In this document: positions 3,587 through 23,870 of the stretch, piece by piece
Layout of the letters: each line of letters begins with the position of its first letter
How positions within the stretch are numbered: position 1 is the stretch's first letter
Source of the DNA: Epithemia pelagica
Lineage: Eukaryota; Protista; Bacillariophyta
NCBI GenBank assembly: GCA_946965045.2
Contig: OX337237.1
Span: 3,038,001 to 3,102,000 of the forward strand
DNA length: 64,000 bases
Direction: 5' to 3'
Made by a program: the position numbers and the translations under genes
The notes under the pieces: model-generated
Told to the model about the DNA's origin: nothing
Database searches by the model: none
Seen by the model: only the letters and a program-made list of their open reading frames with translations

Positions 3587-3601
3587 CATCTAAGGAGGGA
3601 A
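3587..3601 (+). repeat. Left terminal inverted repeat (15 bp)
   Basis: CATCTAAGGAGGGAA, one mismatch to the right TIR. Confidence 0.92.
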
Positions 3602-4290
3602 ATGGGCCCTGGCGCTTGATTTCCACCCCCAAAAGCAAATTTCTAGAAAAAATTCGCCGAATTAAAATTTTTTATGCGCAGTTTATTTTTATATGCGCAG
3701 TTTTTAACTATAATCCTGCTTTCCCAACTTAATCTGCAAATCTAGGTCTAACAATGCACATTTCTCTAGCTAGTTCTAGATATCGAGCTAACTATCACGC
3801 GCATGCAACAATTTTAATGCGCACAAGCCCGCGATCAAACCACGAATAACGCGCGCCACACTCCGATAATGCGCACTACAACTATCTGGCGCGCTCGACC
3901 CCCCCGAGACGCGCATGACGCAACCCTCATGCGCAAGCGTCTGTCCCCTCACCTTTGAATCACGAATTTCCACTCCCACCACATCACACAGCAGCTGCCA
4001 GAAAGACTGACGCACATGGATGTCCCAAAGAATGTCTCAGATGGATCCTCCTTCCCAATCACCCAAACCGCGGGGATTACCAACTCGACACTTTGATCCA
4101 TCAAACAAAACCGAACAACCTAGCATACTAGTCATTCAACAATCAACGACCACCAGAATCGATGCTCATTCATCTCCCTCCACCTCCACCCAACACACCA
4201 CAACAAACAACAACAGCAGCAGCAGCAACAACAGCAATCGATCACCCAACGCTATCGAGATTCCCCTGTTCAATCCCATTATCTATCCAG

Positions 4291-4880
4291 CTTCTTTCAT
4301 CAACCTAACAGCTCTGCCATTCCAATCACGCTACAATTAAAGCGGCTTGGGGCATCTGTCTGATTGTTGCTTGGTTCCTTTTCAGCCACCTTTTTGTTGC
4401 TTGCTTTCTCTCTGCCAAGATTCCCTTTTCAATCCTTTCACCTATCCAACTTCTTTCATCAACCTAACAGCTCTGCCATTCCAATCACGCTACAATTGAA
4501 GCGGCTTGGGGCATCTGTCTGATTGTTGCTTGGTTCCTTTTCAGCCACCTTTTTGTTGCTTGCTTTCTCTCTGCCGAGATTCCCTTTTCAATCCTTTCAC
4601 CTATCCAACTTCTTTCATCAACCTAACAGCTCTGCCATTCCAATCACGCTACAATTAAAGCGGCTTGGGGCATCTGTCTGATTGTTGCTTGGTTCCTTTT
4701 CAGCCACCTTTTTGTTGCTTGCTTTCTCTCTGCCAAGATTCCCTTTTCAATCCTTTCACCTATCCAACTTCTTTCACCAACCTAACAGCTCTGCCATTCC
4801 AATCACGCTACAATTAAAGCGGCTTGGGTCATCTGTCTGATTGTTGCTTGGTTCCTTTTCAGCCACCTTTTTGTCGCTTG
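4291..4880 (+). repeat. 159-bp tandem repeat, ~3.7 near-identical units, followed by three shorter degenerate cores (~4988-5310)
   Basis: CTTCTTTCA(T/C)CAACCTAACAG recurs at 4291, 4450, 4609 and 4768 (period 159). Confidence 0.93.
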
Positions 4881-5743
4881 CTTCCTCTTCAGCCACCTTC
4901 ACTCCAAAACCACTGCACCAGAAGAAGAGGAAGAGGAACTCAAGCACGGCCAGAGCATTCGAGACATTGACACTTGCACTATCTTGCAGCTCTGCCATTC
5001 CAATCACGCTACAACTAAAGCGGCTTGGGGCATCTGTCTGATTGTTGCTTGCTTCCTTTCAACCACGACCTTCACTCCAAAACCGCTACAACAGGAAAAC
5101 AAGAAGAAGAGAAACCCAAGAAGAAGAACGACCACCAGAGCATTCGAAATATTGTCGACATTTGTCCTATCTTTGACACTTGCACTATCTTGCAGCTCTG
5201 TCATTCCAATCACCACGCTACAATTAAAGCGGCTTGGGGCATCTGTCTGATTGTTGCTTGTTTCACTCAGCTCTGTCCTTCATTCCAATCACGCTATTAC
5301 AATTAAAGCGGTTTCGGGCTATCTGTTAGATTGTTTATCAAGAACCCTCCTGTCCTCGTGATACTCCGACTTGAATAGAACAGACCCAAAGCAAGCAGTG
5401 TGACACGGTGGTAGCCAGTTGCTTCTGTTCTATTCTTGTCGCGAGATTGCTTGGACAACCAACCAACCCCTGGTTTTGGAGTAGCAAATTCTGGCACCGA
5501 TTGTTGGATCACAACGAACAAGACGCTACACATAAAGCGCATCGTAGTGTATTCCTTCGATTTGGTTGTTGTTTTGTTACCACCAGAGTTCAGGACAAAA
5601 CCAAAGACGCTACACAATTCAGCGCACATTTTTTACTGTTTAGACAAGTACACAAGGTTGTCTCAAAGACGCTACAATTAAAGCGCTTCCTCGACTACCC
5701 TTGTTGTTGTTGTTGTTGAAACAAAGACGCTACACAAAAAGCG
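4329..5743. promoter_or_regulatory. Array of 11 dyad sites CGCT-N8(9,11)-AGCG ending 18 bp before the ATG at 5762
   Basis: Dyads start at 4329, 4488, 4647, 4806, 5007, 5216, 5292 (N11), 5524, 5608 (N9), 5670 and 5728. The regulatory role is inference. Confidence 0.6.
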
Positions 5744-5761
5744 CATCGTGACAAGTACAAA

Positions 5762-8642
5762 ATGGCGGGCAACCGCATCAAGGGCCCTCGCTACAAAAAG
5801 CCACCGACCGCCAAGAATCCTGGTGACCCTTCTTCAATGAATGATGAAGTGCGAAACAAAAGAAAGGACGTGTCGACTATGACTGTTTCTGGTACCAATC
5901 ATACACTTCGAACACACACAAGCGAGGAATCTCACTACACTGGTATTATGCCCATTACATACGAAAGTGTCCTCAATTGGTATGAAAGTGTTTTCCAAGA
6001 CAAATCAGGAAAATGGACAACAGTGGAGGTACCACATGACGGCCATTATGTGAAGATATTCCTACCAATCTGTTATTCGCCTGCATTCCAAGATATCATC
6101 TGTCACTCCGTTTTCTGTTTCACAAGAATTAAGAACGAGATGGATGATGATGACAAGTTGACTCCAATGGTTGCTCGACTGTTGTTCAAAAAGACTCTCT
6201 ACAGTCCTGTTTCCAATATTTGGAATCAGGTGTTTGGGACGACAGTGATAGACAGTGCTGAGAATCTGAGACAAACCATTATCAGATTTCTTTCCTCTCA
6301 TGGCCTAGTCTCTAAGAAGACACGCAAGGGGATCGGTGGGATTGGAGAAGCATTGAAACGATACCTTCTAGATGATTCCTCCCTTTACAGGAAACCGCGT
6401 CTCGTACCTGTTGGTAAAATCGCATGGGTTATCGAACATATGGTGGCCATACACCGTTTCATCTCAGAATCGACATCTGACGAGAACATGGGCGTGATTT
6501 CCAATATCCAAATGGAGAAAGCACTATTGTATACGATGCCTGACACATGGTTCAAGATGTACCTTGAAGAAAGAGATTCTTTGGTACAATATGGAAGAAA
6601 CGGAGACGATGGCGGTATGTTCTACGATCTACTGCATTATATAGAAAAACAAGAGTTACTGTCTGCCAGGAAATCGAAAGAAATTGCCGTGCAACGTCGG
6701 AGTACAGACTCGCCGGCAAAAAAGAGACAGAAGGTCGTCACTGGTAATGATCCTACTGACGAGAGAAAGGAACAAGTACTACCAACTTCCATTACAACGT
6801 CGAACCAAGTCGCCCTCAAATCAGACCGTGTGGAAGAGGTCAGGAAGATTATAAGCGACGACGATGAAAAAACTGCAGACAACGAGGTAAGATGTTCGAG
6901 CGACTTGCCAAGAATTGAGAAGGATTAGACAATCTCAAAAATGATTGATCTCTTTGTCTTAGAGACGTTGTGCTCCCATAAACAAGGGAAATGAGGAGAC
7001 AGGTGATGGTGTGGTACCACCGCCTTTTATTGAAATTCCACACGTACTTGATCCTATAGTAAACCAGAAGAGAAGAAAAGACTCATGGGACTCGAATGAA
7101 TCCATCGACGACATTGGTGACGGTTACTTAGACAAGTTCGCGGAAAAACAAGCTAACAGAAACAACGAGAACATCAAGTCGGCCATGAAGCTAGCAACCC
7201 AGTATGCTAATAGTATGGGGAAGGACAACACACATGTCGAAATCAAGACATTATTTAGATGCACACTATGCATGTCTTACAGTGGGTTGATGAATGACCA
7301 GGACCCTACAACGCGTGTTTTGCATATCCCACATAGACATCGTCGGAGAGATCTTTGCTACAACACTTCAAGGACGGGCATGCCGATTGAGTCTTTCTAT
7401 ACTTGTTTGAAATTGATGGTCCATCACAACCATCAGAACCTAGTATATGTTGACAAAGTAACATTTGATGAAGCGAACAGGAACCCATTTCCTAAGAAAA
7501 TTCCTATGTCATCATGGAGACAACAGGATCCGAACACACTGATATTGGCGATCATTGCCTTGACAACAGCAACTGATGTCAGCGACCCAGCTTTATTGGC
7601 TTTCGAAATCGACAAAAAGATACTTCATATCTACGAACCAATAAATAATCGATCAGACCAATACTGGGAAGGAACAACGCGTCATGTACTACGGAAATGG
7701 GACCTGGTCAATACGTCAAAAGGTGCCCCGCCTGTCAGTCTATGTTATGACCCATCATTAGTGGAAGAAGATGAAACAACACATGATACAAACAACGAAT
7801 GTAACAAGTGGCGATATCGCATTGTGAAAATGCCAGAACCTAAGAAGGATACTCCAAAGCCAATGCCACAGGCTATTGTGATCAGAATGCTTGGAAACAT
7901 AATGAGTAGTCGACCAAACCCGGGTCGGAAAGAAGGTCAGATAGACAAGAGTATGACGATATCCAATTGTTTTTCGAGTAATCAAATACGGTACAATAAT
8001 GAATTTTCGAGAGGACTAGAGCATGCTGTTGGTGGCAATTCGATCCCTCTTTTGGTGTTGGGACCTGACAATTTCGATGGTAACAGCGACGACGATCCCG
8101 TTGAAGTGGGGTTTTCACGTGATACCGATAAATACGAATACAAGGAGAACGTCGATCTATCTGATGGTGGGTGTTCAGAGACGTGGACTACGGATGGTGA
8201 CATATTGTTCATACCGTGCCCGAAGGTGGGTTTAGAACCCAAGGAGGTGTTACTTGACTCCAAACTTTCCAAGAGAGATATAAATCGATTGCTACCGACC
8301 GTTGTATATTGTCCAGATTCTTGCGTATGCTGTAACAGGGCATTGAAAACAGATACAGACAGCGAAGTCTGTACCTTCATCCCATGTGGACATCTGGTTC
8401 ACGGAAATTGCTTACGAATACAGTTCAAGTATCATAATGTATGGTGTCCCCAGTGTGGACAAAAGATCAAGAGTAACATACACATGTTTGGTGCGGAGAA
8501 GATAGAGGGACACAAGAAAACAGCGGAAGACACTACAACTACGAGCGAGGGATCCCCTGAAGAGGGACAAAGGAAAACAGTCAAAGACACTACAACTACG
8601 ATTGAGGGACGCCCTGAAGAATCATCAAAAAATCACCTGTGA
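5762..8642 (+). CDS. Cargo gene A, 5' part: exons 5762-6886 and 6963-8642; unknown N-terminus, possible degenerate Ulp1-like fold, RING-H2
   Basis: A 76-bp phase-0 intron GTAAGA...TCTTTGTCTTAG (6887-6962) joins ORF 5762 in frame to ORF 7011 without stops. RING-H2 C-x2-C...CGH-x2-H-x2-C...CPQC at 8322-8456. Confidence 0.7.
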
Positions 8643-11600
8643 GTAACAAGCCGTCAACACTAGAACAAAGAGGAGTTGAGACAAAATACAAGCCCGAGGT
8701 TTGTTCGATTTGTATGACCAGAAAAGTGGATTGCGAACTGTTTCTTTGTAGACATACATTTTGTCGGGAATGTGTTGGAGATTGGATGCAGCGGGGCCAC
8801 AAGACATGTATGGTGTGCAGCCAGGATATTCAAAGTCTATTGTACTTCTGTCCTATGACACGTTCTGTTCAAAGAACATATACTCATCCTTCTGAACACA
8901 AAGCAATCTATCAGTCAGCAGAGGGTGAGAAGCCTAAATACCAGCAATGGGGAGGAAATAACTCATCACGTTCCGTTGCAATGCCTGCGAATTGGGGTAA
9001 CCGGAGTGAGCTGCCTGAAGAAAGACATAGAACAGAGCCAACACAACATGATAACGAAAGAACCAAGGAAAAGAGAGAGAATCCACATGGGCTATGGGGA
9101 GGACGGAATCAGAACAACGTCCTGTCGACAGCTCGAAGCCCCAGAACAAATGAGTGGGGTTCGCAACCTGAACATGACAGGCCAGTGTATTGTCAGCATG
9201 GACAGAATCGATTCAATGATGATCATCCAGGATCGAGAGGATCTAATACAACGGATTATCATGGGTCTCGTCATTCACATTTCGATCAAGATAACCAACA
9301 AACTGGAAGAGGAGTCATTGAACGACAAGACCAACATGGATATCATGATAACCACCAAGACGAGTCTAGAGGGAGAAGAGATCAAATCATGGAAAACACT
9401 TACCGGGATAGAAAAAGAAGACATGATAATCAAAATCAATTGTCTAATCGACATCCGATGGATTGGAGGAGATTCTCTGGATACAACGAACATTCCAGAG
9501 AACATACAAGGCACCATTCGGTATATAGAGATAGCCACAATCAATGGTCTAATCGACATCCGATGGATTGGGAGAGATTCCCTGGATACAACGAACATTC
9601 CAGGCACCATTTGTCACTTAGAGACAGTCATCCTGGACACAACGATCATTCTAGGCGTACCCGTCAGAGAGAGCCTAACCGTCCCTCAACTGATAGAGGT
9701 AATAGTCAACCAAATCAATCACCTCGTAGAGAGAGAGAAAAGGACATTCATCACACTACAGAGAGTCGTGGAGGGCAGGATGGCCTATCCAAACTTGGTT
9801 GGAATTCCAAGGACAATCAGGAGAGGGATGATTGGAACAGACAGAGCGGTCAGAAAGCAACCTCCAGTCACCAAGATGAATGTGGACAAGAAGAAGAGAT
9901 ACAAAGCAGAGATGGCAACGGTTCTACAGACAAACAAAAGGGCAAGGACTGTGGCAGGCAAGAGATTGTTGCTTACGAACAACACGGAAATTCAGGAGAT
10001 AACGGGTCTAAGAATGCCAACAACACACCTGACAGTGATAATCCGTCTAGCTGTCACAATGACAGTGTCAACCAAGATGATGCGACACAAACCAAAGAAG
10101 GAAAGGATAGTACCGACAAACAAAATGGTAGCAGCAAGAACAACGATGACCAAATGACAAAAAACGACCATAACAAGGGAAGTAGCATCAACACGACAGC
10201 ACAAACGGATCAGCGCATACAAGACTAACAAGGTACGAAGGAGATTCACGAGTCTGCAATACACGGTAATCATGACGATACTGACGAACAGAATACTTCA
10301 CCGGAAAGGAAAAGAAAAGGATGTAAGAACATTGGTTCATCCAGGGGACTACCCACGAACAAGCAACGACGACAAGAGGGCCTATCGAAGTTGACACTAA
10401 CACATGAAACGATGAAGAAGTATAAGAGACGACAGGCTGAGAAACCTAGCCATTTGACGACAAAATTCTCCAAACCAAATGAATCCGATCATACAGAAAT
10501 GTGTTTTTTTGGAATTCCTGACATGGACAAGGTAGCAAAAAGACTACGCGACTTACTATCACTCTGTCTCAGTAGCAATGATGATCGGAGAATGTTCGGT
10601 ATCTGCTATACAAAGGTTCTGAAAGACTACGACATCACACCAACAGACCTCCAGACAATCATGGGAAAATTACCTAACATGTACGAACAAATGAAAGACA
10701 TGGTTGGTGAAGTGACGGAAGATCCAGCAAGCCATTGTTGTTTCGAAGACAACAAGCTTCATGTGACAGAATGTGACCCGAAGTTCTTAACGACCCGGTC
10801 TCCATGTGCCTTCTTGGTAGAATGTGTACTGAATCGCTGTCAACGACATAAGGGACATCGGAAATACCCCAAAACCGTGTGGTCTGCGTTTGACGATACA
10901 ATCTTCCATTGTCGCACATCCAAGAAAAACTGTGATGATTGTATGGACCATATTTTCCATGACGTGATCGTTATCATCCCTTTGGCCGGTATTTTTTATA
11001 CTTCGGCAATGATAATGAATACTGGGTATGCAACATCGGAATGCACTTCATCTTTGGTAGCACTACCTATATCCTGGCTGCGCTTACGACATTCCGACGG
11101 CCAACCGAGTGGTGGGGCATTCCTCAAAAAGGTTGTCAAGTGTTGGTGTATTGATTGGACATTAAGTGCAAAGAGAGTTGTCCATGAATGCTACCAAGCG
11201 TCTGATGTCGAAAGTGGTTCTCCGCTTTGGGCCCCTGATCATTATACAAATGAAAAGTCCAGACCAGAAATGACACCAAATGACCAACATTCTCTTAGAG
11301 TATGGTATCGTGAAACACTGCTGAATAAAGCCAGTGCTAACAAGACTGGATGCCGAAAGTACGTCCGTGGAGCATTGTATAGAAACCTGTCCCCTCCGCC
11401 TGATACTTCGGTCCGTCCGCTCCTGTTTGATGTAAGGGAATCCGGAGAAGATACAACATTCATTGTTCGGACACGTGGGTACGCGGGTAAAAACAAAACC
11501 ATCAGCCATGTCAAAGTGACAACACTTCAACAAAATGACAAAAACCTACTTTCATTGTTACACAAGAGGTCATGTCACTTCGCACAGAGTGGTACACTAG

Positions 11601-12199
11601 AGAGATCAGCCAATGCAAGGTGTAACCATGGTGATATGGGGACCATGACATCTGTTGGTGTGTGCACAAAAACGGGTGGCAGAAGTACATTCTTTTCTGA
11701 CAAACTTTTCAAAATATCTCCGAACATGATGAATATATTGCCAAAAATCTGTGGAGGTGTCCGGCGATTCTGTGAGAGGAAATTCCCTGGTGTGTTATCG
11801 GCTTTCAGACACCTGGAAACAAACTTCGGTTTGGATATCCCAAACGAATTGGGAGGAAACGAAAGGGGTGTGTTATCATCCTTCATTTTGAGTTGCGATT
11901 TGATGAATGCAAGCCACTATGATATTCATGACGCATCAGTGTCCTTTACAATCTGGACAGAAACCAACCCGGGCAGCACCAACGATTGGTATTTCGTCCT
12001 TCCCAATGTCCTTATAAAGCATAAGGACAAGACTTATCATGGGCTTTGTATCCGGTTATTCCATGGCATTGCGATCGCATGGGACGGGAGAATCATCAGA
12101 CATGGAACATCTGTCCATACACACTCCATACCACCGAAAGACAAGAATGTGGGAAATCATACAATTGGTTGGTTTTTAGCACAAATGCAAGATCTTTGA
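8633..12199 (+). CDS. Cargo gene A, 3' part: RING-HC, His/Arg/Asn/Gln-rich linker, C-terminal TET/JBP-family dioxygenase; one in-frame TAA at 10226-10228
   Basis: C3HC4 RING CSIC...CRHTFCREC...CMVC (8702-8818). ORFs 8639 and 10391 share a frame and only one TAA separates them. TET/JBP motifs: ARCNHGDMGTMTSVG, N-A-S-H-Y-D (HxD at 11915-11923), FVLPN, WDGRIIRHGT (distal His 12101). Confidence 0.75.
9436..9605 (+). repeat. 105-bp internal coding duplication (SNRHPMDW..F.GYNEHSR x2)
   Basis: TCTAATCGACATCCGATGGATTGG at 9443 and 9548. Confidence 0.85.
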
Positions 12200-12344
12200 G
12201 TGCAACCGTAACACAAAACGAAGATGACAATTCTCATGAAATTGGAGGCTTGGCGTCGGGCCAGAAATCTAGTGACGAATAGAGATTTCTAATATACAAG
12301 ACCATGTCCACTTATCAGCAAAACCACTACCTACCATCAATCAA

Positions 12345-12787
12345 TGCCAATGATACCCCAAGGGTCTCTACGAAAATTTGGAGCGATTCAAGTTCTTGAA
12401 GAATGTCTTTGCTCCATGTCCATAGAATTTTGGGACGACGGCAACACCACACCGGTAGGGTCTATTGCAAGTTTTTTGGTTGATGATAGACAAGTTCAGA
12501 GCCTTTACTGTCCATGCCTATGATACCCCAAGGGTCTCTATGAAAATTTGGACCCATTCGAGTTCTAGAAGCATGTCATTGTTCCATGTCCATGGAATTT
12601 TGGGACAACAGCAAAGCCACACCGATAGGGTCTATTGCACGACTTTTGGTTGAGGATAGACAAATTCAGAGCCTTTACTGTCCATGCCTATGATACCCCA
12701 AGGGTCTCTACGAAAATTTGGAGCCATTCAAGTTCTTGAAGAATGTCTTTGCTCCATGTCCATGGAATTTTGGACGACGGCAACGCT
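12345..12787 (+). repeat. 170-bp tandem repeat, ~2.6 units, non-coding
   Basis: TGATACCCCAAGGGTCTCTA at 12351, 12521 and 12691. Confidence 0.9.
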
Positions 12788-12924
12788 ACCAGATTCAGGA
12801 AGTATGGAATAGAAGTTGATTTAGATTACAAATACGTTGTACCCAAGATGTGATGATAAAGGATGATGAGATATGGGTGTTGTTGTTGATTAGAAAATGG
12901 GCTTTTTGTCTTGAAATGGTGCCA

Positions 12925-14190
12925 TCATTCGTTCTTATCATTGTTTGATTCAATCTGTTCAATACACGCCTTGTAACAGGTCTTAAACACGAACATGTAA
13001 TTATAAAAGCCTCCTGTGGGTGGGCAAGAGAGTAACCACTTCGACCACGATGCTTGCTTCCAGTCATTGTAGAACGGGGATTGGTCATACCGTGACATAT
13101 AATGGACATGCCCCGCGTCGGCCTTCCAAGCATCCGTGATCGACTGTTGAATCAAGACGCGCATTCTCTGGGGAATGTCTGGTGTATACCGCGAAGGGTC
13201 GTATTCCGGATATTGTCTCTGAGTATGTAGAGCATGCCTCACCAGCAAACAGAAGCGCCAGACAAAGTACTTGTTTGGTGTCGCGAAACATGATCGGCCT
13301 TTCCAACACCCACTTAATCCTTTCGGACAAAGGCAACACTTACAGATGTCAGGTAGATTGGTAATGGATTGCCTAAAAGAGGTTATCTGGTTTGTGTTAT
13401 CAGATAATAGCTCAATCGCATCAGATTCCCATTTTGCTTTGCTATGATACAAATGCGATCGACACTGATAATCATCTGCCCTGTTTGGACAGAAATTTTG
13501 ATGGACCCCACACCCATAACAACAAGTGCCACAGTGTGACTCTACCTTGCCAAATTTATGATACGGATCCTTTCCCATTATAAGACAAAAGGGACACATG
13601 GTTTTAGGTGATTCTCCATCATTCAAACTTGCCATATGACCGAGGAATTCGTCAAAAATCTTCTTTTGACTGTTTGGGTGCGAGTGTAACACTGGATCTT
13701 GGATATCAATCCTTGCTGTTTGGTCAGTTCCATGCACCATTTTCTTAGCAAGTTGTTTTCGAGGTGGTCGATGTCTGGTCAATACTGTTTTGTAAGCCAA
13801 AGTCTTTGTCCGATACTTAGAAACAAAGGTACCAGACGACGTCGATTTAAAGGTTATCGTCTTCACTTTGCGCGGTGGGTTCCTTCGAGGGTTTGTTGAT
13901 TCGCTTGAGTTGGGGTTGGATCCATCTTCTCCACGCTTCAAGAACGCATCCGATTTGGTTGATTTTGTCTTGTGACCGAACACGACGGTTGTTATATCAC
14001 TTAGATGATCCGCATCATCGGAGTCACTCTCTACCTTGGACGCTGCTTTTGCTACTCCATGGAAATCATCAAAAACTTCAGGTACACCAGAGGAGTTCTG
14101 GCTTTCAATACTCGAGTTATCGCTTTCATTGTTCATATTTGCAAGTATGACCATACCTCGGATGACTGTTTTTGGCACTGTTATGTCCAA
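12925..14190 (-). CDS. Cys-rich cargo protein 1 (unknown family)
   Basis: 421-aa ORF; CPFC...H...CGTCCYGCG...CP, NKYFVWRFC, WSKWLLS, FYNYMFVFKTCY shared with two neighbours. Start codon uncertain. Confidence 0.75.
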   Translation of the reverse strand: MDITVPKTVIRGMVILANMNNESDNSSIESQNSSGVPEVFDDFHGVAKAASKVESDSDDADHLSDITTVVFGHKTKSTKSDAFLKRGEDGSNPNSSESTNPRRNPPRKVKTITFKSTSSGTFVSKYRTKTLAYKTVLTRHRPPRKQLAKKMVHGTDQTARIDIQDPVLHSHPNSQKKIFDEFLGHMASLNDGESPKTMCPFCLIMGKDPYHKFGKVESHCGTCCYGCGVHQNFCPNRADDYQCRSHLYHSKAKWESDAIELLSDNTNQITSFRQSITNLPDICKCCLCPKGLSGCWKGRSCFATPNKYFVWRFCLLVRHALHTQRQYPEYDPSRYTPDIPQRMRVLIQQSITDAWKADAGHVHYMSRYDQSPFYNDWKQASWSKWLLSCPPTGGFYNYMFVFKTCYKACIEQIESNNDKNE

Positions 14191-14468: not shown

Positions 14469-15410
14469 ATGGCTGACAATCCGGAGGACCAACCGGAGGA
14501 TGAATCGGGTGACGAATCGGAGGAAGAAGATTTTTATGTTCGGGAACGTAGACGACGACGAGAAATGCGGGCGATCGACGACAGGAACTTGGAAGTGAAT
14601 GATCGGCCTTGTTACAGGGACGCTGGGAGGATCTTTTTTGATTACGATAATGAAGAAGAAGATGTACCATAAGTCATAGAACAACTCAGAGAAGAGCTGC
14701 GTGTCGGTCATGAAATCCAGACTGAATTCAAACGGTTGGCGGACGAAATGCTTAGAGGTGAGAAACTCTGTCCATACTGTGTTATCCTTGGTCGTCCCAC
14801 ACCACATCACCAGTGCAATCATGGAAATACTACAGTGGTAACACGTGCGGCATATCTCAATTATTTGGTTATCTGGCAGCAGAATTTTTTGATGCGTTGT
14901 AACTTATGTCACCGCCACAGGCATCCAACATTTCATTGTCAGGTGTGTAGGGAATGTTTCCGAATTCCCGAACGCTCAATACCTTTTGGGATTCCACAAC
15001 ACGATTTGGATTCATGCAGTGTCTGTGCGGAATCTGAGAACAAGCACTTCGTGTGGCAGTTCTGTATGCTCATACGCCATATTGTGGCGCGTACCTTTCA
15101 AAGAACATCATCGTACGATGGTGTGAACTTTCCCCGTCAAATCACCTGGCTAATGTTTACTATTGTCCGCAGCGTTTGGCTTGAGGAATTGCGATCCCGT
15201 TTCTATTTTGATGATAACGATTGTGCCCCATACGATTATGCCCGAGCATCTGATAAAACATGGGCAGTATGGTTGCTTTCGTTGCCTCATTCTACGGCTG
15301 GTTTTCGCAACTACATGCCACTCTTTGTCAGGTGCTTCCGTAATTGTCTCGAAAGAATGGCTGAGACGGCGGAGTTGGAACGTGGAAATATGGATGGTAA
15401 TGATCATTGA
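14469..15410 (+). CDS. Cys-rich cargo protein 2 (acidic N-terminus; one in-frame TAA at 14670-14672)
   Basis: ORFs 14469 and 14736 are in the same frame, with one TAA and 21 sense codons between them; CPYC, NKHFVWQFC, WAVWLLS, FRNYMPLFVRCF. Confidence 0.7.
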
Positions 15411-15641
15411 CATATATTATGAATCCTGTTATCTGTTCCCAGTTTGCCTTTCGAAGAAGTCGAGTCTTTGTTTGATACATGCCACTCTTTGTCAGGTGCT
15501 TCCGTAATTGTCTCGAAAGAATGGCTGAGACGGCGGAGTTGGAACGTGGAAATATGGATGGTAATGGTCATTGACATATATTATAAATCTTGTTATCTGT
15601 TCCCAGTTTGCCTTTCGAAGAAGTCGAGTCTTTGTTTAATA
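15312..15641 (+). repeat. 164-bp tandem duplication between two convergent genes
   Basis: TACATGCCACTCTTTGTCAGG at 15312 and 15476; duplicates the last ~32 codons and 3' flank of Cys-rich protein 2. Confidence 0.9.
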
Positions 15642-16712
15642 CAATGGTTTCGATGAAGACATCAAGGCTGTGTAACAATGACGGAAGAATGGCATGTAAT
15701 TGTAGTATCGACCGAAAGACATGGAGACAAGCCATTTAGAACAGGAGTCTTGGTCCAGAACATGACAAAATGGAGATGTGTACTGAGAAGACTCCATCGG
15801 ATCTCGCAGTTTGTTGTACATCAACTCTGTTGCGTTTTTGATAATATCCTGTGCATGTTTGGGAATCGTGCCTGGTCCTTTGCAATTGGGCTTCAATTGT
15901 GCGCACACCAACGCCCGTCCAGCAATATGACAGAATCGCCAGACGAAGTACTTGTTGCAAGAGTTCCAACAACCATGCGAGAAGACGCATTCTGAATAAG
16001 AATTGCATGGCCTTAAGCAAGACTTACACACCAATGGAACCTTGTTTATGTCTGATTCTTCGCATGTGATATTCATCGAATCATGGATATACAGGGCTTC
16101 GGTGCAACAACGTTCATTCCCACCTGAATCACATCCGTTCATGGGCACTCCACAACCATAACAACAATCGGCACATGAGATAGATTTACCGAAGCGATGC
16201 CAACATTTTCCTGTAAGTCTACGATCTGTTGAAAGGTTGTCGGTTACAAAACACCAAGGACAGACTGGCTCTGGGGGAACATCATTGGATCCATAGATTT
16301 TATTGACAAGCTCAGTGAACCGAATAACTTCGAGATGCAGCTTATCTCGGTTTGCTCTTGGTTTACACATCGGAGGAGAGTCACGTAATAGCAAGATTGG
16401 AATAGTAGATGGATCGGCAACCTTGAGCTTCTTCTTATATGGGTTTGGGATCAACTGATACAATGGGCGCTTGATTGGTGGAGGTTTCTTCTCCTCTTCT
16501 TCCTTGGTATCAAGCTTAGAAGAAGGAAGTGGATGACATTTGGTTTTCGGGGTTGGAGAGTGCGTTTTGACCATGGGGGTCCCTATTTCCTCTAGCTCAT
16601 ATGGGTTGATCATCATTTCTTCATTAGATGGAGGTATCTTTGTGACTGGAAAGTTTGGTTTGACCACCAAGGGTGGAACTGTTTTCTTCCTCGATTTGTA
16701 TGGGTTGATCAT
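15636..16712 (-). CDS. Cys-rich cargo protein 3 (Pro/Lys-rich N-terminus with NPY x3)
   Basis: 358-aa ATG ORF; CPWC, CADCCYGCGVP...C, NKYFVWRFC, CSKWLVS, YYNYMPFFRHCY. Confidence 0.78.
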   Translation of the reverse strand: MINPYKSRKKTVPPLVVKPNFPVTKIPPSNEEMMINPYELEEIGTPMVKTHSPTPKTKCHPLPSSKLDTKEEEEKKPPPIKRPLYQLIPNPYKKKLKVADPSTIPILLLRDSPPMCKPRANRDKLHLEVIRFTELVNKIYGSNDVPPEPVCPWCFVTDNLSTDRRLTGKCWHRFGKSISCADCCYGCGVPMNGCDSGGNERCCTEALYIHDSMNITCEESDINKVPLVCKSCLRPCNSYSECVFSHGCWNSCNKYFVWRFCHIAGRALVCAQLKPNCKGPGTIPKHAQDIIKNATELMYNKLRDPMESSQYTSPFCHVLDQDSCSKWLVSMSFGRYYNYMPFFRHCYTALMSSSKPLY

Positions 16713-16908: not shown

Positions 16909-19900
16909 TCATGAGGTCGAATTGCTGACGGATTGTTTCAATCTTTCTTTCATTTCATTACAGCGTTTCTCGAGATTGTCACGGGCACTTTCATTGAATT
17001 CGGAAGCCCATTCTTTGATGTTGCGCACGGCCCAGACATTGTCACTAAAGTTTCTCAAATTACGACTGTCTTCTTGGAGCAAATCTTTTTCAAGTGAAGA
17101 ATGGAAATATACTGGGATAGAATCACGGTCTTGAATCATTTCTGGGTTCTTATTCACTACACCAACAACCTCAACAATATTCCGGAGTGGAACCATGACA
17201 ATTTCAGCTATTCGATGTAGGTCAAAACGCTTCCGCCATTTTTGAAAGAGAACGGATGATTTCTCGATATCAGCTGCACTCCGTACATATGTCGTTCGGA
17301 GAAGGACATGGGTCATCTCGGGTGAAGTTGTAGGTTGACATACCGGTGATGGTTGTATTTGTATGGGGTTTGTTCGAGGAATGGGTATTTGAATGAAGCA
17401 TATCGTTTGACATAGGATGGTATCAAATTCTCCGAGAGGTTGGTTGTATACCTCGTCAAGAGGTTTCCTTTTTTTCTTTGGAACTTTAGCCATCACCCAA
17501 TCTCTCCATGGCCCCTCGCTTTGATAATTCGGATGAGCCCGTATATTTCCTATCTTGGGGTCTTCGAACTTAAGTTCTGTGCTCCCGAACAATTCCACTG
17601 TGGTTGAAATCTCATTTGTTGGATCATCACTCATCCCGTCTATATGATGAAAAAAGCGTTTGTAATGTAATCGAAAGAAGTGATTACAAAACGGTGGCAA
17701 TGTCATGTCATGATTTGTTTTGGAATGGAATTCGATATTCACTGATACCACATCCTCCTCGTGTGGTGCTGCTGTCAATCGCCTGTGTACACTACTCGTC
17801 TGGTTTCGGTTTGTTCCGTCTTGTTCTTTTCTGGTCGTGCCTGGAACTTGAATCGACATACCCAATGGAGACGGAAGATCCTTGTCTATTTCATTTGATG
17901 ACTGGTCTTGATTATCACCAGAAGTATGTACGTTAGTGTGAGGTACTGGCATAAAACGTTTTTCTCTGGTCATGGATACTACTATGACCGTTCCACGGCT
18001 ATTTGAGGTTGATGTGGTAGGGAGTTGGTTTTGGGATCCCTTTTTTCTCCTTGTTTCATAAGGCGACTTCCCTTCCTGGAGAAAGGTGACATGATCTTCT
18101 TCAAGACCTGTTGCTTCCTGCAGCATTTCCAAGCTTTGCATCCACCAGATATTTTCTGCAAGTTGCGACTCAAAAATTCCTTTTCCACGTTTCTGTACCG
18201 TTTTTGCATTCAATTTCACAATTTCCTTATGATTACTTTCCTCTGACTCCACATCAAGCAGTTGTGCTGGTCCAAAATTCTGAATCTGTTGTATAATGTG
18301 TATGAGATTGTGGAATTTTGGTATCATCCACCCGTTGGACATCAATTTGCCTTTTTTATCGAGCCTGGGTGCATATCTCCTGATGCCATCCATCAAAATC
18401 CGCACTGATTCGAGAGACTTGGATGCTGTTGTTTGTCCTTCTTGTGAGTCTGGGTCTGTTTCCCAGAATGTATCCATACAAATCCAGCTGTTGAAACACA
18501 AAAGAGTCTCGAATAGATGCAGGAAGTCTATGTATGGTTCCTGCTCATCAACATCCCAGATAGACCTGTAAGCAACTGGGTCATCATCAAAAACAGTTTC
18601 AGCTGTGATATCAATGTCAGCACTATCATCATCATCAAGACGTGTACGTTCGTACTCTTCATCTGGTGGAGTATCATCCTCATTGTCAGCAATAGGTTCA
18701 CTTGTCTCTTGCACTTGGTCCACATCCGATTGACATGTCTTGTTGGTGGTCTTAGATGTTTGCTTTGCTTGTCGTTTTTTCCATTCCGCAACCACCTTGT
18801 TCCATTTCTTTGCCATATTCTTCGCAAATATAAGGCAACCTCTGGCAGTGGCACATAGAGCTGCTGAAGCAAACATGATCCCAACCCACTCATTGGCAGT
18901 TACTTTTGAAAGGTTACTGATCCCGGTCGAGAATGATGTTCCGGGATATCCAAGTTTCGATGAATACGAGAATACAGTCTGTCTACTTGCCCGAAAGATT
19001 GAATTGTAGACATAATCAAACATGGCCCGTTCAGTTTTTGTCATCAAAGTGAAAAAGTCAATCATGATGTATCTCATTATCCCAGATTTCAATGTATGAA
19101 GAACGTCACAAGTACTGGCCGAGAAAATCCCATGTTCAGAATTGGTTCCTTCACCCAGGTAAACCTTGGAAAAACAAAGATCGACTGCATATTGTCCCAT
19201 GTCATGCAATTGGGTTTTTGCAGCTGACACAAGGGTATTGACCCCTCCATCTCTGCTATCTTCTTGACTTACTTGCGATGTGCTCAAACAGTTAGGAACA
19301 GTCAAAGTCGAAAATGTATCATTGTCTCTCTCTTGGTAATCAACATCCTGTTCGGTCAGTTTTTCTCGATTTTCATTAAGACCCAATGCATTCAAGCACA
19401 TTTTGTATGTACTTGCAGCGTTGATATAAGAACATTCATGCCATGGGTATCTGCTATCCCTTGGTTTAATGTTGCAACACCATGATAGTCTTCCAACACT
19501 TGGATGATGCGAGGCATACCGACCTGCAAGGTTATCCTGAGACTTCCCGTCTCCTTTGACAACAATCATTGGCAATATCAAACGGACAACTTTGATAATC
19601 CCATGGAGGCGTAGTTTCATCCATAAACCTTCCTGTTTTTGGATACTGACAAGACCTTCGAGGATCTTAGTCAATTGAGCATGATAATTTCGGCAAGGAG
19701 TCCCTTTATCGAGGATATGTTTTGCCGCCGATGATTTTCTTTCCATGTCTGTAATAGTCCCAAGGATGATCTGTCGCCTTGCTTTCCTCATTTGTGTTTC
19801 CGTTAGAAAAGATGGCACCATTACAACAGGCTCCGATGTATATCTTCCATCCCCTGTTGCATGTCTTTTGTCCATATAACAGACAAGACCAACCACGAAG

Positions 19901-20751
19901 GCATCTGGATCATCTCTATATTTCTCCACTGTTTTCCTAAATACTTCTCCGTCTTGTATATTTTGGATGTGCTTGTTTGGAACATATGGACGATACGGAT
20001 TGTCATCATCGAGGATCGTATTTTCTTTCTTGGTTGCATCGGGATCTTGTTATACACGCTGTAGTTGACTGATCAAATCAAATACTGGTGTTGTTATCGA
20101 TTTCTCACTCTCTGGTACAACCACACCCTGTTTTTGGGTGAATTCCATTGGTACCGGGAAAAATTTGGCCTTGGGGTAATTGAAACCTTTGGTAGAAAAC
20201 TTATCGATGAACGTTTTCCTCTTTGAATGGTTGTCCAGGAAGAACCCAGGACCGCATCTTGAGTATGTGTCACTCGACCATGCCAGGATCGAATTGTACA
20301 AATATTTGGGGCAACCAGCTTTCCGAAGTAACATCATAAGTGAGACCAAGGCTGCATCGTGTTTATGAAGTTTCAATTGCTTCCCATCTCTATCGAGGAA
20401 AGCAGGAAAATCAACCGGGCACTCCTTAATATTATCTGTATCACCAGGTACATAGTATGCTTTTGGTGGGTCAGCATGCGGAATAGTGGTGTCATCGTCC
20501 ATGATATCAATATTCATCGGACCAGCATTCATATTACTGGCACAATCATCGTCGTCATCGCCAACATTTGGCCATTTCCCTTGGGTGTTCATTTTCAATT
20601 CACAAACTGTTTCGTGACGGCTGATTCCTCTTGCATCGAAACGTGATTGACAGAAACGACACACTTGAAAGGATATGAAGGACTCCTCTTGTTGGCTTGT
20701 ATTTGAGCATCTCTTTCGCGACTTCTTTTTTACTTTACAACGCTGGCCCAT
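16909..20751 (-). CDS. Plavaka/CACTA-like DDE transposase, ~1280 codons, with one in-frame TAA (20050-20052)
   Basis: ORFs 20751-20050 and 19929-16909 are in frame, and the gap reads QLQRV*QDPDATKKENTILDDDNPYRPY...DGEVFRKTVEKY. N-terminal CRFC..HETVC zinc finger; motifs VCYMDK, VKGDGKSQD, CDVLHTLKSG, PKFHNLIH..FGPAQLLDVESEESNHK resemble Plavaka/CMC transposases. Confidence 0.82.
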
Positions 20752-21325: not shown

Positions 21326-23319
21326 ATGGCAGGAGTCACCACCAGAAATGCAGCTCCAACGAGGCGTCGACCCTTAGCAGTCCGAAATGCAAACTATGGA
21401 AGTAATCAGAAAGAGGTTGAACGACAACGAAGAATCATCTTGGCAGCAGTGGCAACAAGAAATAAAGAGAATCTTCCTAACAAGGACGGGACAATTACAA
21501 ACAAAGATGCTCTTATTGCAGCAGCCAATGGAGGTTTAGTACTCCAAGAAGATAGTTCTGATGATGAGGAAGAAGAGGAACAGATCTCGATGAACAACGA
21601 TCAAGCACAAGCACAAGAAGGCACAACTGTGTAAGGGAGTGGTAATCTTTTGGAGCAGGCAACAAATTCAGAAAGAGATGGAGCCGATGTGACTTCAGCA
21701 GATGATAGCAATAATGAACAGGGTGGGCTGAGAACACAACCATCATCTGGTGTTGCGCAACCAACAAACACGGCAGTTAATAATATGGAGGAGGACAACG
21801 TCGGTGTAAATATTCTCACTGGACCTGAAATGCAACAAGCCTTGCAGAATATGAGCAATGGACCCAGTGAGTATGATGGAGATGATTTTGATCCTAATGA
21901 GAGACATTTTCCTGCTGGAGGACCTGTCAGTAAGTTGTTAGATGCACAAAATGGAGGAGGACAATTTGTCGGTGAGACGGCTCTAATGACGGGGGTGTTT
22001 GTGGGTTGAATGCATCAGGTGATACCTTTGCTAACGACGTTTCTTCCCTTTCGGATATGTTGTCATCGTCGTCATCTACTTTGCTAACAACAGGGCCTGA
22101 TCAGGCGATGGAAACTCTTCTACAAGACAATATTCAAAATCAGTTGGCACAGGAAACACAGACAACAACAGTACACCATAATCAATCATCTTGCCCGACA
22201 AGTACGATTGTAACATCCACTACACACAAAGGTTCTGTCGAAAAGGACAAGAATAAGAAGCAAAAGCCGAAGAAAAAGCCTGAGGTGGTATCGGAGAAGT
22301 TCTTTGATACATTTGTTCGGAAGGTGGCATGGCGTTATGTCAAGTATTTCTCCATGTCCGAAGATACTAAGGCAGATCCGAATGGTCTTTGGGGGAAGTA
22401 TGGCAAAACATATTTTACTGAGCACTATTTCAAAGGCAAAGGCATTACGGATGCAAAACAACAAGAGGAGTGGTGGATTGAACATTCACCTTATATGCTT
22501 GACAAGTTCCGAAGCAAACGATCAAATGTTCTGGCTTCCATGCGAAAAGCATTCATAAGTAAGTGTCAATCGAAGAGTGAATATGTTGGTTCATCACGTC
22601 GTCTTCTCACAAAGAGATGTGAGATAATTTGTTGCGGAATCTAGAACATGTGGGTCTTGATCTATGGCGTGACAGTAATTTCCAGCGGAGGTATCCATGC
22701 CTTTTGAACGACTGTGAAGACTTTGGGCCAATGCCTACCCTGGAAGAATTTCTGTTATTGAGAGGAGAGAAGTGTGACAACTATGCATTTTCATATCTCT
22801 TGCAATTGTTTGGTCCATGTGTCTATGGTGAGAATATGCATAAAACCGTGATTGATTTCAATTTTGGTGACCACACTGAGCAGCAGGGAAAGGAACATTG
22901 CGAAAAGGCCTTGAAGTTATTCACTTCAAGTGACGAGGCGTTCATATTGACCATCCTTGTGGATTGCTGGGATGTGTGGACTCACATGGGCAAGACCACT
23001 TTCAAGGCAAAACTATTTGAATTAAATCCAAGGTGGTACAATGAAAATGGTGTTGATCAAATGATTGATACATCCTCAGCAAGGTATCCTCGCTTCAAAT
23101 ATTCAGGCAGTTGGAACTCAAGTCGATGTATGAATGAGGATGGTATGGACTATTTTGAGGATATGGAGAGAGAAAATCGCTCGTGAAGACAGAGCAGGCG
23201 ACCGCGGTATCTGGTTCATGACGTTTCTCAATGGGCAATATCGCTCTCGAATGGGGTATGCAGATGATGATGCTGTGACAAGGCCTTCTAAAAGGCCGCG
23301 AAAACGGTCGTGGCAGTGA
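21326..23319 (+). pseudogene. Divergent accessory gene of the DNA transposon (TnpA-like position), spliced, with one stop and two frameshifts
   Basis: In-frame TAA 21632-21634; frame change near 21975; 86-bp phase-1 intron GTAAGT...CTAG (22559-22644) giving RKAFIKHVGLDLW; conserved-looking block FTSSDEAFILTILVDCWDVW...YSGSW; +1 shift in GAGAGA near 23167 would extend it to 23319. Confidence 0.6.
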
Positions 23320-23526
23320 TTGATCAGAGTGAAAATTGGTTTCATTTCATATACTACTCCTATATAGCTACATGTATTGTGTTCCATTCATTGGCTGGTT
23401 GTTAGTGGGAGTGTGTGCATGGTGCTAGTTAAATGCACTGTGTTCAACTTGCTTGCACTTGATGCTGGAGTAATGCGCATGATGGTGATGTGACACAATC
23501 AAGGATGAGTGCATACATAGGAGGGT

Positions 23527-23775
23527 ATGTGATGACTGTTGGTTCTTGACTGTGCATGAAGGTGGACGATTGTGATGACTGTTGGTTCTTGACTGCGCAT
23601 GAAGGTGGAGGGATGTGATGACTATTGGTTCTTGACTGTGCATGGTGTTGAAGTTGGTGAAATGTGGGTCATGCGCTTGCTGGTTCTGGAAAGCACATTT
23701 TTAGTAATAACGTGAGGAAGGGGTATGCGCATGTTCTTGTAGGTGTGCGCGTGTTCTTGTAGGTGTGCGCGTGTC
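23527..23775 (+). repeat. Right subterminal repeats: ~44-bp unit x3 (23527-23644) and 20-bp unit x2+ (23733-23775)
   Basis: GATGACT(G/A)TTGGTTCTTGACTG(T/C)GCATG three times; GTTCTTGTAGGTGTGCGCGT twice. Confidence 0.88.
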
Positions 23776-23855
23776 CTGCGCGCGGATGATTCTAGTAGGA
23801 TGCGCTTAGGGGTGCTTTCTTATCGATAATTAAACCGCCATAAACTGGCGTACCG

Positions 23856-23870
23856 TTCCTTCCTTAGATG
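23856..23870 (-). repeat. Right terminal inverted repeat (15 bp)
   Basis: TTCCTTCCTTAGATG, followed by the AA TSD. Confidence 0.92.

Follow-up and report, generated by a model that had tools for sequence, protein, structure and literature searches.

A PlavakaB-like DNA transposon of a diatom-like genome, carrying a predicted TET/JBP-fold dioxygenase joined to two RING fingers

A bounded Plavaka-type element and its genes

Positions 3587–23870 of the window (the 64,000-nucleotide stretch of Epithemia pelagica contig OX337237.1 analysed here) constitute a bounded cut-and-paste DNA transposon of ~20 kb. The left terminal inverted repeat (TIR; 3587–3601, plus strand, CATCTAAGGAGGGAA) and its inverted right-hand partner (23856–23870, CATCTAAGGAAGGAA on the minus strand) agree at 14/15 positions, start with CATC and are the sole two matches in the 64 kb (0.09 expected). 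A 2-bp target site duplication (TSD), AA, lies at both flanks (3585–3586 and 23871–23872). The insertion splits a plus-strand Copia-type pol/integrase ORF (5′ part 2370–3586; 3′ part 23873–25001), with a weak gag_pre-integrs match upstream and SH3_retrovirus downstream. Removing the element in silico together with one AA brings back the integrase frame, giving a 782-aa Copia pol frame that contains GILPKRLAKCHVPVCSACNFAK and has a single stop. The CATCTAAGGA terminus recurs in two further insertions of this assembly, L001 (both ends present, TSD of TG rather than AA) and L004 (one end examined, flanking DNA unlike that of the window). CAT/ATG is thus part of the element, leaving a TSD of 2 bp. 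The TIR match, AA flanks and restored Copia frame uphold the bounded element described in the first-pass annotation.

The minus strand carries a DDE transposase gene (16909–20751; 1,285 aa in intact copies), interrupted here by an in-frame stop (Leu to stop, 20050–20052). The window transposase itself has no direct Pfam match. It shares 217 features with Plavaka clusters (atlas feature score 0.97); protein P0001, which has 97% identity with the window ORF, aligns in colinear HSPs to the protein of environmental contig L006 (E 6e-44), which matches Pfam Plavaka at 3.5e-12 (46.6 bits, cut-off 26.3). By this transitive homology the transposase is assigned to the Plavaka type, and the CATC…GATG termini and 2-bp TSD agree with PlavakaB, the TET-carrying subgroup in fungi (Kojima 2025, PMC12730594). 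The element is a PlavakaB-like member of the CACTA/CMCT superfamily, multi-copy and recently active in a diatom-like genome, in line with the Plavaka/CACTA placement proposed earlier.

Subterminal repeats, also proposed at first pass, are real. Five copies of an ATGCGCA core, putative transposase-binding sites, occupy the left end (3667–3940), and the right end (23470–23810) holds ATGCGCA and GTGCGCG units with 43-bp and 20-bp tandem arrays; 10 of the 14 ATGCGCA matches in the window fall within ~400 bp of the two element ends. An upstream repeat region on the plus strand (4258–5743) combines a four-unit 159-bp tandem array (4258–4888) with nine CGCTACA-N4-AAGCG dyads, ending 19 bp 5′ of ORF1. 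Counted as CGCT-N8-AGCG, there are nine exact dyads, all on the plus strand (4329–5743), against 0.26 expected; the count is not 11. In a diverged element, L002, six copies of the motif precede the ORF1 homologue, and the CpG-ended dyad is retained 5′ of ORF1 in two families that can no longer be aligned there at the DNA level. Calling these repeats CpG-rich was partly right: CpG observed/expected reaches 1.27 in the left subterminal region and 0.86 in its right-hand counterpart, and is 0.62 for the promoter repeats.

ORF1 (5762–6928, plus strand) is intact in the window at 388 aa, the length it has in most copies; it has no Pfam match, and its homologue in L002 is 35% identical. The three Cys-rich ORFs, Cys1 (12925–14190, minus strand), Cys2 (14469–15410, plus strand; 313 aa in intact copies, Q to stop at 14670–14672 here) and Cys3 (15636–16712, minus strand; 358 aa), are 30–33% identical with ~10 invariant cysteines, which fits the paralogue family claimed for them. 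Cys3 belongs to a 28-member cluster and is 81% identical over 110 aa in L002. Intact members carry two or three such paralogues; segment 12603–14209, comprising part of a 170-bp repeat array (12344–12773) and Cys1, is present in the window copy and absent from L001, L003 and L004. The plus-strand ORFs towards the right end (21326–23186) measure 227, 193 and 222 aa in intact copies; in the window the first is split into pieces of 102 and 119 aa.

The RING–TET fusion and its dioxygenase domain

A RING-H2/RING-HC/low-complexity/TET–JBP fusion lies at 7011–12282 (plus strand), as a pseudogene split into ORFs 7011–8642, 8639–10228 and 10391–12199. The RINGs and TET domain had been read as separate genes; intact copies instead have a single fusion ORF of 1,699–1,757 aa, in which a conserved N-terminal region is followed by RING-H2 and RING-HC, and a long low-complexity stretch links these to the TET/JBP-fold Fe(II) dioxygenase at the C terminus. 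Relative to intact copies, the window has a frameshifting 1-bp deletion in an A-run (8627), a GAA to TAA nonsense change (10226–10228) and a 1-bp deletion in a T-run (12173) that alters the last ~35 residues of the TET tail; either deletion could be a homopolymer assembly error. Both RING fingers stand as first described. RING-HC (C3HC4; 8696–8836, plus strand) passes its Pfam cut-off (zf-C3HC4_3, E 1e-7, 32.1 bits versus 27), and RING-H2 (CxxC...CxHxxHxxC...CxxC; 8316–8456, plus strand; zf-RING_2, E 1.4e-3) scores under the gathering threshold (19.3 versus 27.3 bits) yet has 8/8 ligands. At the RNA level, the sole hint of expression is a 186-nt contig from a seawater polyA metatranscriptome.

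The TET/JBP-type double-stranded β-helix (DSBH) domain spans 11090–12199 (plus strand), with HxDxxD at 11915–11932 and the distal His at 12101–12103. Pfam Tet_JBP had no match to the window domain and, among 51 family members, matched only 1; PDB sequences searched with a profile gave no hit, so the TET assignment depends on predicted structure. Searching the PDB by Foldseek with an AlphaFold model of the domain (pLDDT 89.9) placed TET2 best (5.7e-10), then CMD1, CcTet and NgTET1; in AFDB it matched a ‘Tet-like 2OG-Fe(II) oxygenase’ (5e-12). VIA-align Z-scores for TET2, CMD1, NgTET1 and CcTet were 14.5–18.5 (top three 18.5/16/15; TET2 18.5, CMD1 16, CcTet 14.9), against at most 11.7 for AlkB/FTO. 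As modelled, the cargo domain is a TET/JBP-fold Fe(II) dioxygenase with an HxD…H iron site. The first-pass assignment thus holds for fold and site, on structural grounds, and fails for the Tet_JBP profile.

The active site is well kept across the 51 relatives: H and D in 51/51, D+3 and the distal His each in 50/51, and a candidate N-terminal Arg in 48/51. In CMD1 and NgTET1 the HxDxxD aspartate contacts 5mC at the N4 amino group (residue roles from PMC7854593). At the position of the C5-carboxylate-binding Arg (TET2 R1896, NgTET1 R289), placed by motif spacing and not by residue-level superposition, 39 of 50 members have a conserved Asn. The family does not conserve the canonical C-terminal 2OG-binding Arg, and activity or co-substrate may therefore differ.

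Copies, linkage and CpG mutation

The family comprises ~50 copies, each gene having ~30–50 sequences at at least 90% identity. Several lines agree that cargo travels with the transposase, as the first-pass annotation had supposed: the transposase and RING–TET clusters are about equal (53 and 47 sequences), L003 and L004 are full copies with transposase and cargo, L002 (a diverged paralogous element, 35–60% aa identity) keeps the order ORF1–RING–TET…Cys, and the tail-to-tail TET/Plavaka pairing recurs in environmental contigs L006 and L011. One copy with the same TIRs, L001, has an intact transposase and no cargo; it is an internal-deletion derivative, so the linkage is not refuted.

The window copy has inactivating lesions in its transposase, RING–TET and Cys2 genes; on this evidence it is pseudogenised and non-autonomous, and would be movable only if supplied in trans. 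Between intact copies, dN/dS is 0.30 for RING–TET, 0.13–0.25 for the transposase and 0.2–0.5 for ORF1, values that point to purifying selection on transposase and cargo.

Among copies, CpG transitions are 4.2-fold commoner than other C/G transitions, so the copies are probably methylated; the enzyme would be supplied with substrate, yet any protection is incomplete. CpG observed/expected is 0.77 in the element versus 0.94 in the rest of the window, and this depletion, with the hypermutability, shows that copies are not kept methylation-free. In the diatom Phaeodactylum tricornutum, methylation is reported to be restricted to transposable elements (PMC12344493). In fungi, oxi-mC lies on many classes of element (PMC12730594), which suggests that the action is not self-specific.

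Candidate functions and relation to known systems

We consider it fairly probable that this is a TET–RING Plavaka element whose fusion protein acts on its own methylated DNA against silencing. The protein would act on methylated cytosine, most plausibly in the element’s own CpG-bearing subterminal and promoter repeats; transposase-binding sites and promoters would then stay usable despite host CG methylation. The same role has been put forward as a hypothesis for fungal TET+ transposons (PMC12730594). The RINGs may give the same polypeptide an E3-ligase or chromatin-targeting function. The chemistry could be oxidation with 2-oxoglutarate or a CMD1-like reaction, since a conserved Asn seems to occupy the place where the C-terminal 2OG-binding Arg normally sits.

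That Asn, together with CMD1 as second-best structural match, lends some weight to a different enzyme: a hypermodifier rather than a demethylase, producing CMD1-like 5-glyceryl-methylcytosine or JBP-like hydroxylated thymine, a new mark on or around the element that may influence transcription or transposition. Kojima 2025 allows this for divergent fungal types (PMC12730594). Chlamydomonas CMD1, which converts 5mC to 5-glyceryl-methylcytosine with vitamin C as co-substrate (PDB 7CY4–7CY8), shares the DSBH fold, an HxDxxD whose Asp reads N4 of cytosine, and an N-terminal Arg ~100 residues before HxD. Both are atypical at the C-terminal Arg position, although CMD1 keeps the Arg but turns it away; identity is only 11–13%, and CMD1 is encoded by the host rather than carried by a transposon. 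We regard hypermodification as unlikely: TET2 is the best match, the candidate N-terminal Arg is retained, an RxxRH cluster adjoining the distal His is a potential 2OG-binding site, the Arg-to-Asn call is based on spacing, and neither a glycosyltransferase nor any other partner is among the element’s genes.

A role in transposition mechanics, with RING–TET demethylating CpG subterminal repeats for transposase binding or marking donor or target DNA rather than relieving transcriptional silencing, seems improbable and overlaps largely with the favoured anti-silencing account. Every subterminal ATGCGCA repeat has a CpG, transposase and cargo are under similar constraint, and binding to subterminal repeats is methylation-sensitive in maize Ac and Spm; against this, cargo-less L001 persists with an intact transposase, though it could be served in trans. 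Arabidopsis VANDAL VANC and maize Spm TnpA, which bind specific DNA sequences and are not known to have base-modifying enzyme or RING domains, have only the concept in common with the present element (a transposon factor relieving methylation of its own family), with no known homology.

That the cargo is selfish baggage or host-directed, its TET and RING domains inert or acting genome-wide with no specific benefit to the family, is very improbable: oxi-mC in Coprinopsis and Laccaria also covers retrotransposons and centromeres (PMC12730594) and the window copy and others are decayed, but RING–TET is constrained across intact copies, its active site is conserved, gene order persists in L002 and the TET–Plavaka pairing recurs in unrelated environmental contigs.

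TET/JBP expansions linked to KDZ (Kyakuja/Dileera/Zisupton) transposases in basidiomycetes (Iyer et al. 2014, cited in PMC12730594) are likewise multi-copy genes travelling with DNA transposases, CcTet being a structural match here. They differ in transposase superfamily (KDZ, 8-bp TSD for Zisupton), in AG-type TETs that Pfam-level profiles find where the present clade is missed and, as far as that citation describes them, in having no RING fusion.

Closer counterparts are the boundary-defined TET+ PlavakaB elements published for the Agaricales fungi Agaricus bisporus and Gymnopus confluens, with CATC termini and a 2–3-bp TSD (Kojima 2025, PMC12730594). These narrow the novelty assumed at first pass, which knew of no boundary-defined example in diatoms. 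Compared by termini and fold, the two share a Plavaka transposase, 5′-CATC…GATG-3′ ends, a 2–3-bp TSD and a TET/JBP-fold dioxygenase inside the TIRs; both dioxygenases are so divergent that structure mainly identifies them, and the same anti-methylation role is proposed. The present termini are CATCT, the fungal ones CATCA, and HxD here contrasts with HxE in the fungal PE type, which several transposon lineages, Plavaka among them, carry. The diatom-like element also fuses the enzyme to two RING fingers in a ~1,700-aa protein, and its extra ORF1, Cys-rich and right-end genes bring it to 18–20 kb. TET-carrying Plavaka transposons have so far been described only in fungi; the host here is a diatom-like stramenopile.

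Boundaries, transposase and copies of the element

The element is delimited by TIRs, CATCTAAGGAGGGAA at 3587–3601 and an inverted partner at 23856–23870 with 14 of 15 bases identical, which are the only matches with two or fewer mismatches in the 64 kb (0.09 expected). AA lies on both flanks, and excision of 3587–23870 together with one AA fuses the ORF at 2370–3586 in frame with that at 23873–25001. The joined ORF (782 aa, one stop) contains ...GILPKRLAKCHVPVCSACNFAK..., the Copia-type integrase zinc-finger region, and Pfam finds a weak gag_pre-integrs match upstream and SH3_retrovirus downstream in the interrupted host ORF. A bounded element with TIRs, a 2-bp TSD and a host frame restored on removal, as proposed in the first-pass annotation, is thus borne out.

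Two further copies from the same assembly define the termini at independent sites. L001 (ENA ERZ21939226, ctg1263l) reads ...cccttg|CATCTAAGG...CCTTAGATG|tgagc across both ends, and L004 (ctg1341l) reads ...ttttgga|CATCTAAGG at its single fetched end, a third insertion site with an identical terminus. In the two complete insertions the TSD is 2 bp long, AA for the window copy and TG for L001. Because the termini of L001 and L004 are the same while their flanks differ, CAT/ATG is part of the element, and its 2-bp TSD varies in sequence. A rival start at CTAAGG with an AT TSD, which also keeps the frame, is excluded by the constancy of CAT/ATG at independent insertions with differing flanks. Two of the three insertions lie within or adjoining Copia pol ORFs near gag_pre-integrase/integrase (window 2370–3586 and 23873–25001; L004 5509–6966), which could be coincidence in DNA rich in TEs or a sign that other TEs are preferred as targets.

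The transposase had been described as a Plavaka/CACTA-like DDE enzyme, and three lines place it in Plavaka. Pfam hmmscan (E up to 10) gives no PF18759 Plavaka match in the window ORF, in P0001 (a relative 97% identical to it) or in five relatives. The AlphaFold model of the 1,006-aa ORF (11-sequence alignment) is unusable (pLDDT 38.5), and a word-based search for homologues, started from the transposase alignment, returned same-genome fragments only, with zero Pfam-labelled relatives. The first line comes from Atlas, a resource comparing language-model features of protein clusters, which matches the transposase to a Bacillariophyta cluster and two others whose members carry PF18759 (feature score 0.97, 217 of 256 features shared); at a greater distance come neighbours with the CACTA model Transposase_21. 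Second, the environmental contig L006 encodes a TET homologue, P0013 (36% identical, E 6e-66), and, tail-to-tail to it, a protein of 1,188 aa scoring 46.6 bits on PF18759 (E 3.5e-12, cut-off 26.3); BLASTP aligns P0001 to the latter over 573 aa (E 6e-44), with a further two colinear HSPs. Opposite D, D and E of the L006 protein the element's transposase has the candidate catalytic motifs YMDK, KGDGKSQD and ESEESNHK; the H(3)H motif is present (KFHNLIH), and the C(2)C motif is not retained (SWCC in the element's transposase family versus CRGC in the L006 protein). Third, the termini CATCT...AGATG share four of five terminal bases with those of PlavakaB, the Plavaka lineage carrying TET in fungi (5'-CATCA..TGATG-3', with 2–3-bp TSDs against 2 bp here; Kojima 2025, PMC12730594). 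The assignment therefore holds through homology to the L006 protein, although not through a direct match to the Plavaka profile.

Protein clusters of the element's genes, built at ≥90% identity and with members spread over many contigs of one assembly, contain 53 members for the transposase, 47 for the RING-TET gene (a RING-H2/RING-HC/TET fusion), 36 for the 388-aa ORF1 and 28 for the Cys-rich paralogue Cys3. The window's two RING-bearing ORFs (543 and 529 aa) share one cluster, whose representative, P0175, has 1,699 aa and whose other members have 1,683–1,757 aa. The full copies L003 and L004, 97–98% identical to the window, each encode ORF1 (388 aa), one ORF of 1,699 or 1,702 aa, two Cys-rich genes, a 1,285-aa transposase and three right-end ORFs. 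Relative to these two, the window copy has three lesions in the RING-TET gene (1-bp deletions in an A-run at 8627 and a T-run at 12173, and GAA>TAA at 10226), a Leu>stop in the transposase (20050–20052) and a Gln>stop in Cys2 (14670–14672), and its first right-end ORF is split into 102 and 119 aa. The homopolymer deletions could be assembly errors: the extra base is present in most sequencing-run contigs, and one contig sides with the window. The substitution lesions are harder to dismiss, and private changes in the window lineage are about twice those of L003 or L004, so we judge the window copy to be dead and non-autonomous.

Among the four copies compared, a 1.6-kb segment (12603–14209), which holds the Cys-rich paralogue Cys1 and a portion of a 170-bp repeat array (12344–12773), is present in the window copy only and lacking from L001, L003 and L004; the family's set of cargo genes is therefore still in flux, by gene duplication or recombination between copies. 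L001 is a 12.8-kb internal-deletion derivative without 6822–12525 (RING-TET) and with its transposase intact. It is thus a cargo-less copy with the same TIRs, which the first-pass annotation had named as refuting evidence; the linkage of cargo and transposase stands, since L001, at 97–98% identity, arose by deletion from an ancestor that bore the cargo. Just beyond the right end of the L001 copy is a 1,264-aa ORF with a weak DEAD-helicase match (L001 2361–6155). Intact and cargo-deleted copies side by side in one genome provide a natural experiment for methylome comparison.

The dioxygenase domain and its RING fusion

The 602-aa TET ORF has 632 relatives at E ≤1e-3, counted at 50% clustering, among 1.84 billion cluster representatives (367 at ≤1e-10). 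Pfam Tet_JBP (PF12851) leaves the window domain unmatched at E up to 10 and touches one of 51 aligned relatives (E 0.0055), and a TET family profile has zero matches to PDB sequences at E up to 10. A word-based search with the ORF finds no near-identical protein, the intact ~1,700-aa gene falling outside the length range of that search. The clade is invisible to Pfam Tet_JBP, and surveys of TET distribution probably overlook it.

We modelled the product of 11090–12199 with AlphaFold (51-sequence alignment; pLDDT 89.9, pTM 0.89). Foldseek against the PDB ranks TET2 first (5.7e-10) and CMD1 next (1.4e-8), then CcTet and NgTET1, with FTO behind; VIA-align gives Z scores of 18.5 for TET2, 16.1 for CMD1, 15.0 for NgTET1 and 14.9 for CcTet, and a next tier of ALKBH3 and FTO at Z ≤11.7. 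At the top of the AlphaFold-DB cluster matches (5e-12 to 1e-7) stand entries named Tet-like 2OG-Fe(II) oxygenase or JBP1/TET oxygenase. The modelled domain is a double-stranded beta-helix fold nearest to the solved TET/JBP members.

In the alignment of 51 relatives (P0175 numbering), the HxD...H iron triad comprises H1578 and D1580, both invariant (51/51), and the distal H1640 (50/51); D1583 is conserved in 50, and R1479 and R1639 in 48 each. The TET/JBP HxD...H domain of the initial annotation is thereby upheld by predicted fold and triad, but not by Pfam Tet_JBP. We rejected assignment to Kojima's fungal PE type, whose hallmark is HxE, in contrast to the invariant HxD here. In known structures N4 of 5mC is hydrogen-bonded by the residue at position +3 from the HxD Asp (D350 in CMD1, D234 in NgTET1, N1387 in TET2; PMC7854593), and conservation of D1583 at this position argues for a cytosine-type substrate. 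Two arginines hold 2OG (R1261/R1896 in TET2, R224/R289 in NgTET1), the C-terminal one lying six residues ahead of the base-stacking aromatic (PMC7854593). The N-terminal candidate here is R1479. The C-terminal position, placed by spacing without superposition, is Asn in 39 of 50 sequences and neither Arg nor Lys, with an aromatic six residues on in 47 of 50, and the family alignment has no conserved Arg/Lys column after the distal His. With an Asn at the Arg position by this spacing, the co-substrate may be other than 2OG.

Of the two RINGs first annotated, the RING-HC passes Pfam thresholds (zf-C3HC4_3 32.1 bits, cut-off 27; zf-C3HC4 30.3 bits, cut-off 21), also in the intact fusion proteins P0175 and P0185, whereas the RING-H2 is recognizable by all eight of its ligands (CxxC...CxHxxHxxC...CxxC) but not by its zf-RING_2 score (19.3 bits, threshold 27.3). 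Pfam on all element ORFs and their relatives (E up to 10) yields matches to the RINGs alone. Both RINGs lie ~650 residues upstream of the TET domain on the same polypeptide, with a histidine/arginine-rich low-complexity stretch between. An intron joining the RING and TET ORFs was considered and rejected: intact copies have a single read-through ORF, and there are no spliced joints in contigs of the three runs holding the element, which appear to be DNA assemblies (contigs up to 443–509 kb). This architecture suggests base modification coupled to ubiquitin signalling.

Among the homologues checked, the double RING and TET share one polypeptide in the source genome only. Pfam finds a RING in none of eight long TET-clade homologues from elsewhere (a DEAD-box helicase in one), and 18 metagenome loci, from a search with 11 closer TET-clade sequences, contain zero homologues of the RING region, ORF1 or the Cys-rich genes; the fusion and accessory genes therefore appear specific to lineages of the source genome. 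On each of the environmental contigs L006 (JGI 3300060905) and L011 (Ga0102812), a TET-clade gene and a Plavaka-type transposase lie tail-to-tail as in the element; both contigs lack RING, ORF1 and Cys-rich genes. P0129, a 922-aa relative in the TET clade, has an N-terminal DEAD/Helicase_C module in place of the RINGs, another fusion architecture. Within the source genome, sequence comparison indicates that the fusion and accessory genes are old. The diverged paralogous element L002 keeps the gene order, with ORF1 (35% amino acid identity), the N-terminal region and RING-H2 (40%), TET (60%) and Cys-rich genes, and has a Copia insertion between these genes.

Comparison of the three Cys-rich ORFs confirms them as paralogues, in agreement with the first-pass annotation. 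For this family, Atlas offers chance-level leads to IBR/RBR zinc domains (0.84) and Pfam nothing. A 164-bp tandem duplication (two units, 97% identical; 15312–15643) runs from the 3' end of Cys2 through intergenic DNA up to Cys3.

Promoter repeats, constraint and CpG footprint

Of the window's 14 copies of ATGCGCA, ten lie within ~400 bp of the element's two ends; a 159-bp unit is repeated four times in tandem upstream of ORF1. Also upstream of ORF1 (4329–5743) are nine copies of CGCTACA-N4-AAGCG, on the + strand only (0.26 expected). L002 has six copies upstream of its ORF1 homologue (L002 3435–4682), where the DNA is unalignable to the window; sharing of the dyad despite this divergence points to a conserved putative protein-binding site. 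The 16-bp dyad, with a CpG at either end, is probably a site for an element-encoded protein, possibly a methylation-sensitive one. The left end of L002 was not found where expected; a CAA/CAC microsatellite of ~450 bp (L002 2980–3430) stands in its place, directly upstream of the first dyad.

We computed dN/dS between intact copies, a choice that biases against stops and leaves missense changes unaffected. Values are 0.13–0.25 for the transposase, 0.30 for RING-TET (28.5 synonymous and 32.5 non-synonymous changes against a neutral ~1:3.8) and 0.2–0.5 for ORF1. The cargo is thus constrained to the same degree as the transposase. The element is a mobile, multi-copy, PlavakaB-like one carrying a single RING-RING-TET fusion gene under purifying selection.

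CpG transitions are 4.2-fold commoner per site than transitions at other C/G positions in three aligned copies, and CpG o/e is 0.77 in the element versus 0.94 in the remainder of the window. The simplest reading of both is that copies are CpG-methylated at least part-time, in agreement with the TE-restricted methylation reported in the diatom Phaeodactylum tricornutum (PMC12344493). So read, the footprint shows that substrate is available and that protection, if any, is incomplete. A hint of transcription comes from a seawater polyA metatranscriptome, in which one 186-nt contig falls on 11409–11592 (95–99% likeness).

A candidate counter-silencing role

TET-bearing DNA transposons with defined ends, PlavakaB included, are already published for fungi, so far the only group in which such elements were structurally defined, and recently, with the same anti-methylation role proposed as a hypothesis (PMC12730594); literature searches combining Plavaka or TET/JBP with diatoms returned nothing relevant. 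The present case adds the non-fungal host, a TET clade that Pfam does not cover and in which Asn takes the place of the expected Arg (by spacing), the double-RING fusion, the accessory gene set and the recurrence of the TET–Plavaka pair in environmental contigs.

In the element, a dioxygenase whose iron site is intact and whose cytosine-reading position is an Asp goes with CpG-bearing terminal and promoter repeats, and the copies bear signs of CpG methylation. We propose that the RING-TET fusion would modify 5mC on or near the element. As in the fungal proposal, this could keep promoters and putative transposase-binding sites usable, and the RINGs may contribute E3 or targeting activity. Three other readings seem less likely. 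The TET domain may be a CMD1-like hypermodifier; CMD1 ranks behind TET2 and ahead of the other TET/JBP members in both structural comparisons. Alternatively, RING-TET may act directly in transposition, although L001 persists with an intact transposase and RING-TET deleted. Last, its activity may be non-specific or the gene a passenger, a reading against which the purifying selection on RING-TET speaks.

A more far-reaching reading, to which we give little credence, is of an active family in diatom-like algae whose ~1,700-aa RING-RING-TET protein would be a self-directed epigenetic editor. Its TET domain, from the Pfam-uncovered clade of 632 representatives and without the canonical 2OG-binding Arg, would carry out a non-canonical (CMD1-like or new) 5mC modification, while the RINGs would attach ubiquitin to chromatin, or to factors maintaining methylation, wherever the TET domain acts. 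If true, this would be a two-pronged counter-silencing enzyme, undescribed in any organism.

The pairing of a PlavakaB-type transposase with a divergent TET/JBP protein also in a stramenopile, diatom-like by the taxa of its Atlas neighbours, and in two environmental contigs makes the TET-transposon strategy far older, or more mobile, than an oddity of fungi would be. The family would give diatoms, where methylation is reported to be TE-restricted at least in Phaeodactylum, a candidate enzyme of 5mC modification in several dozen copies.
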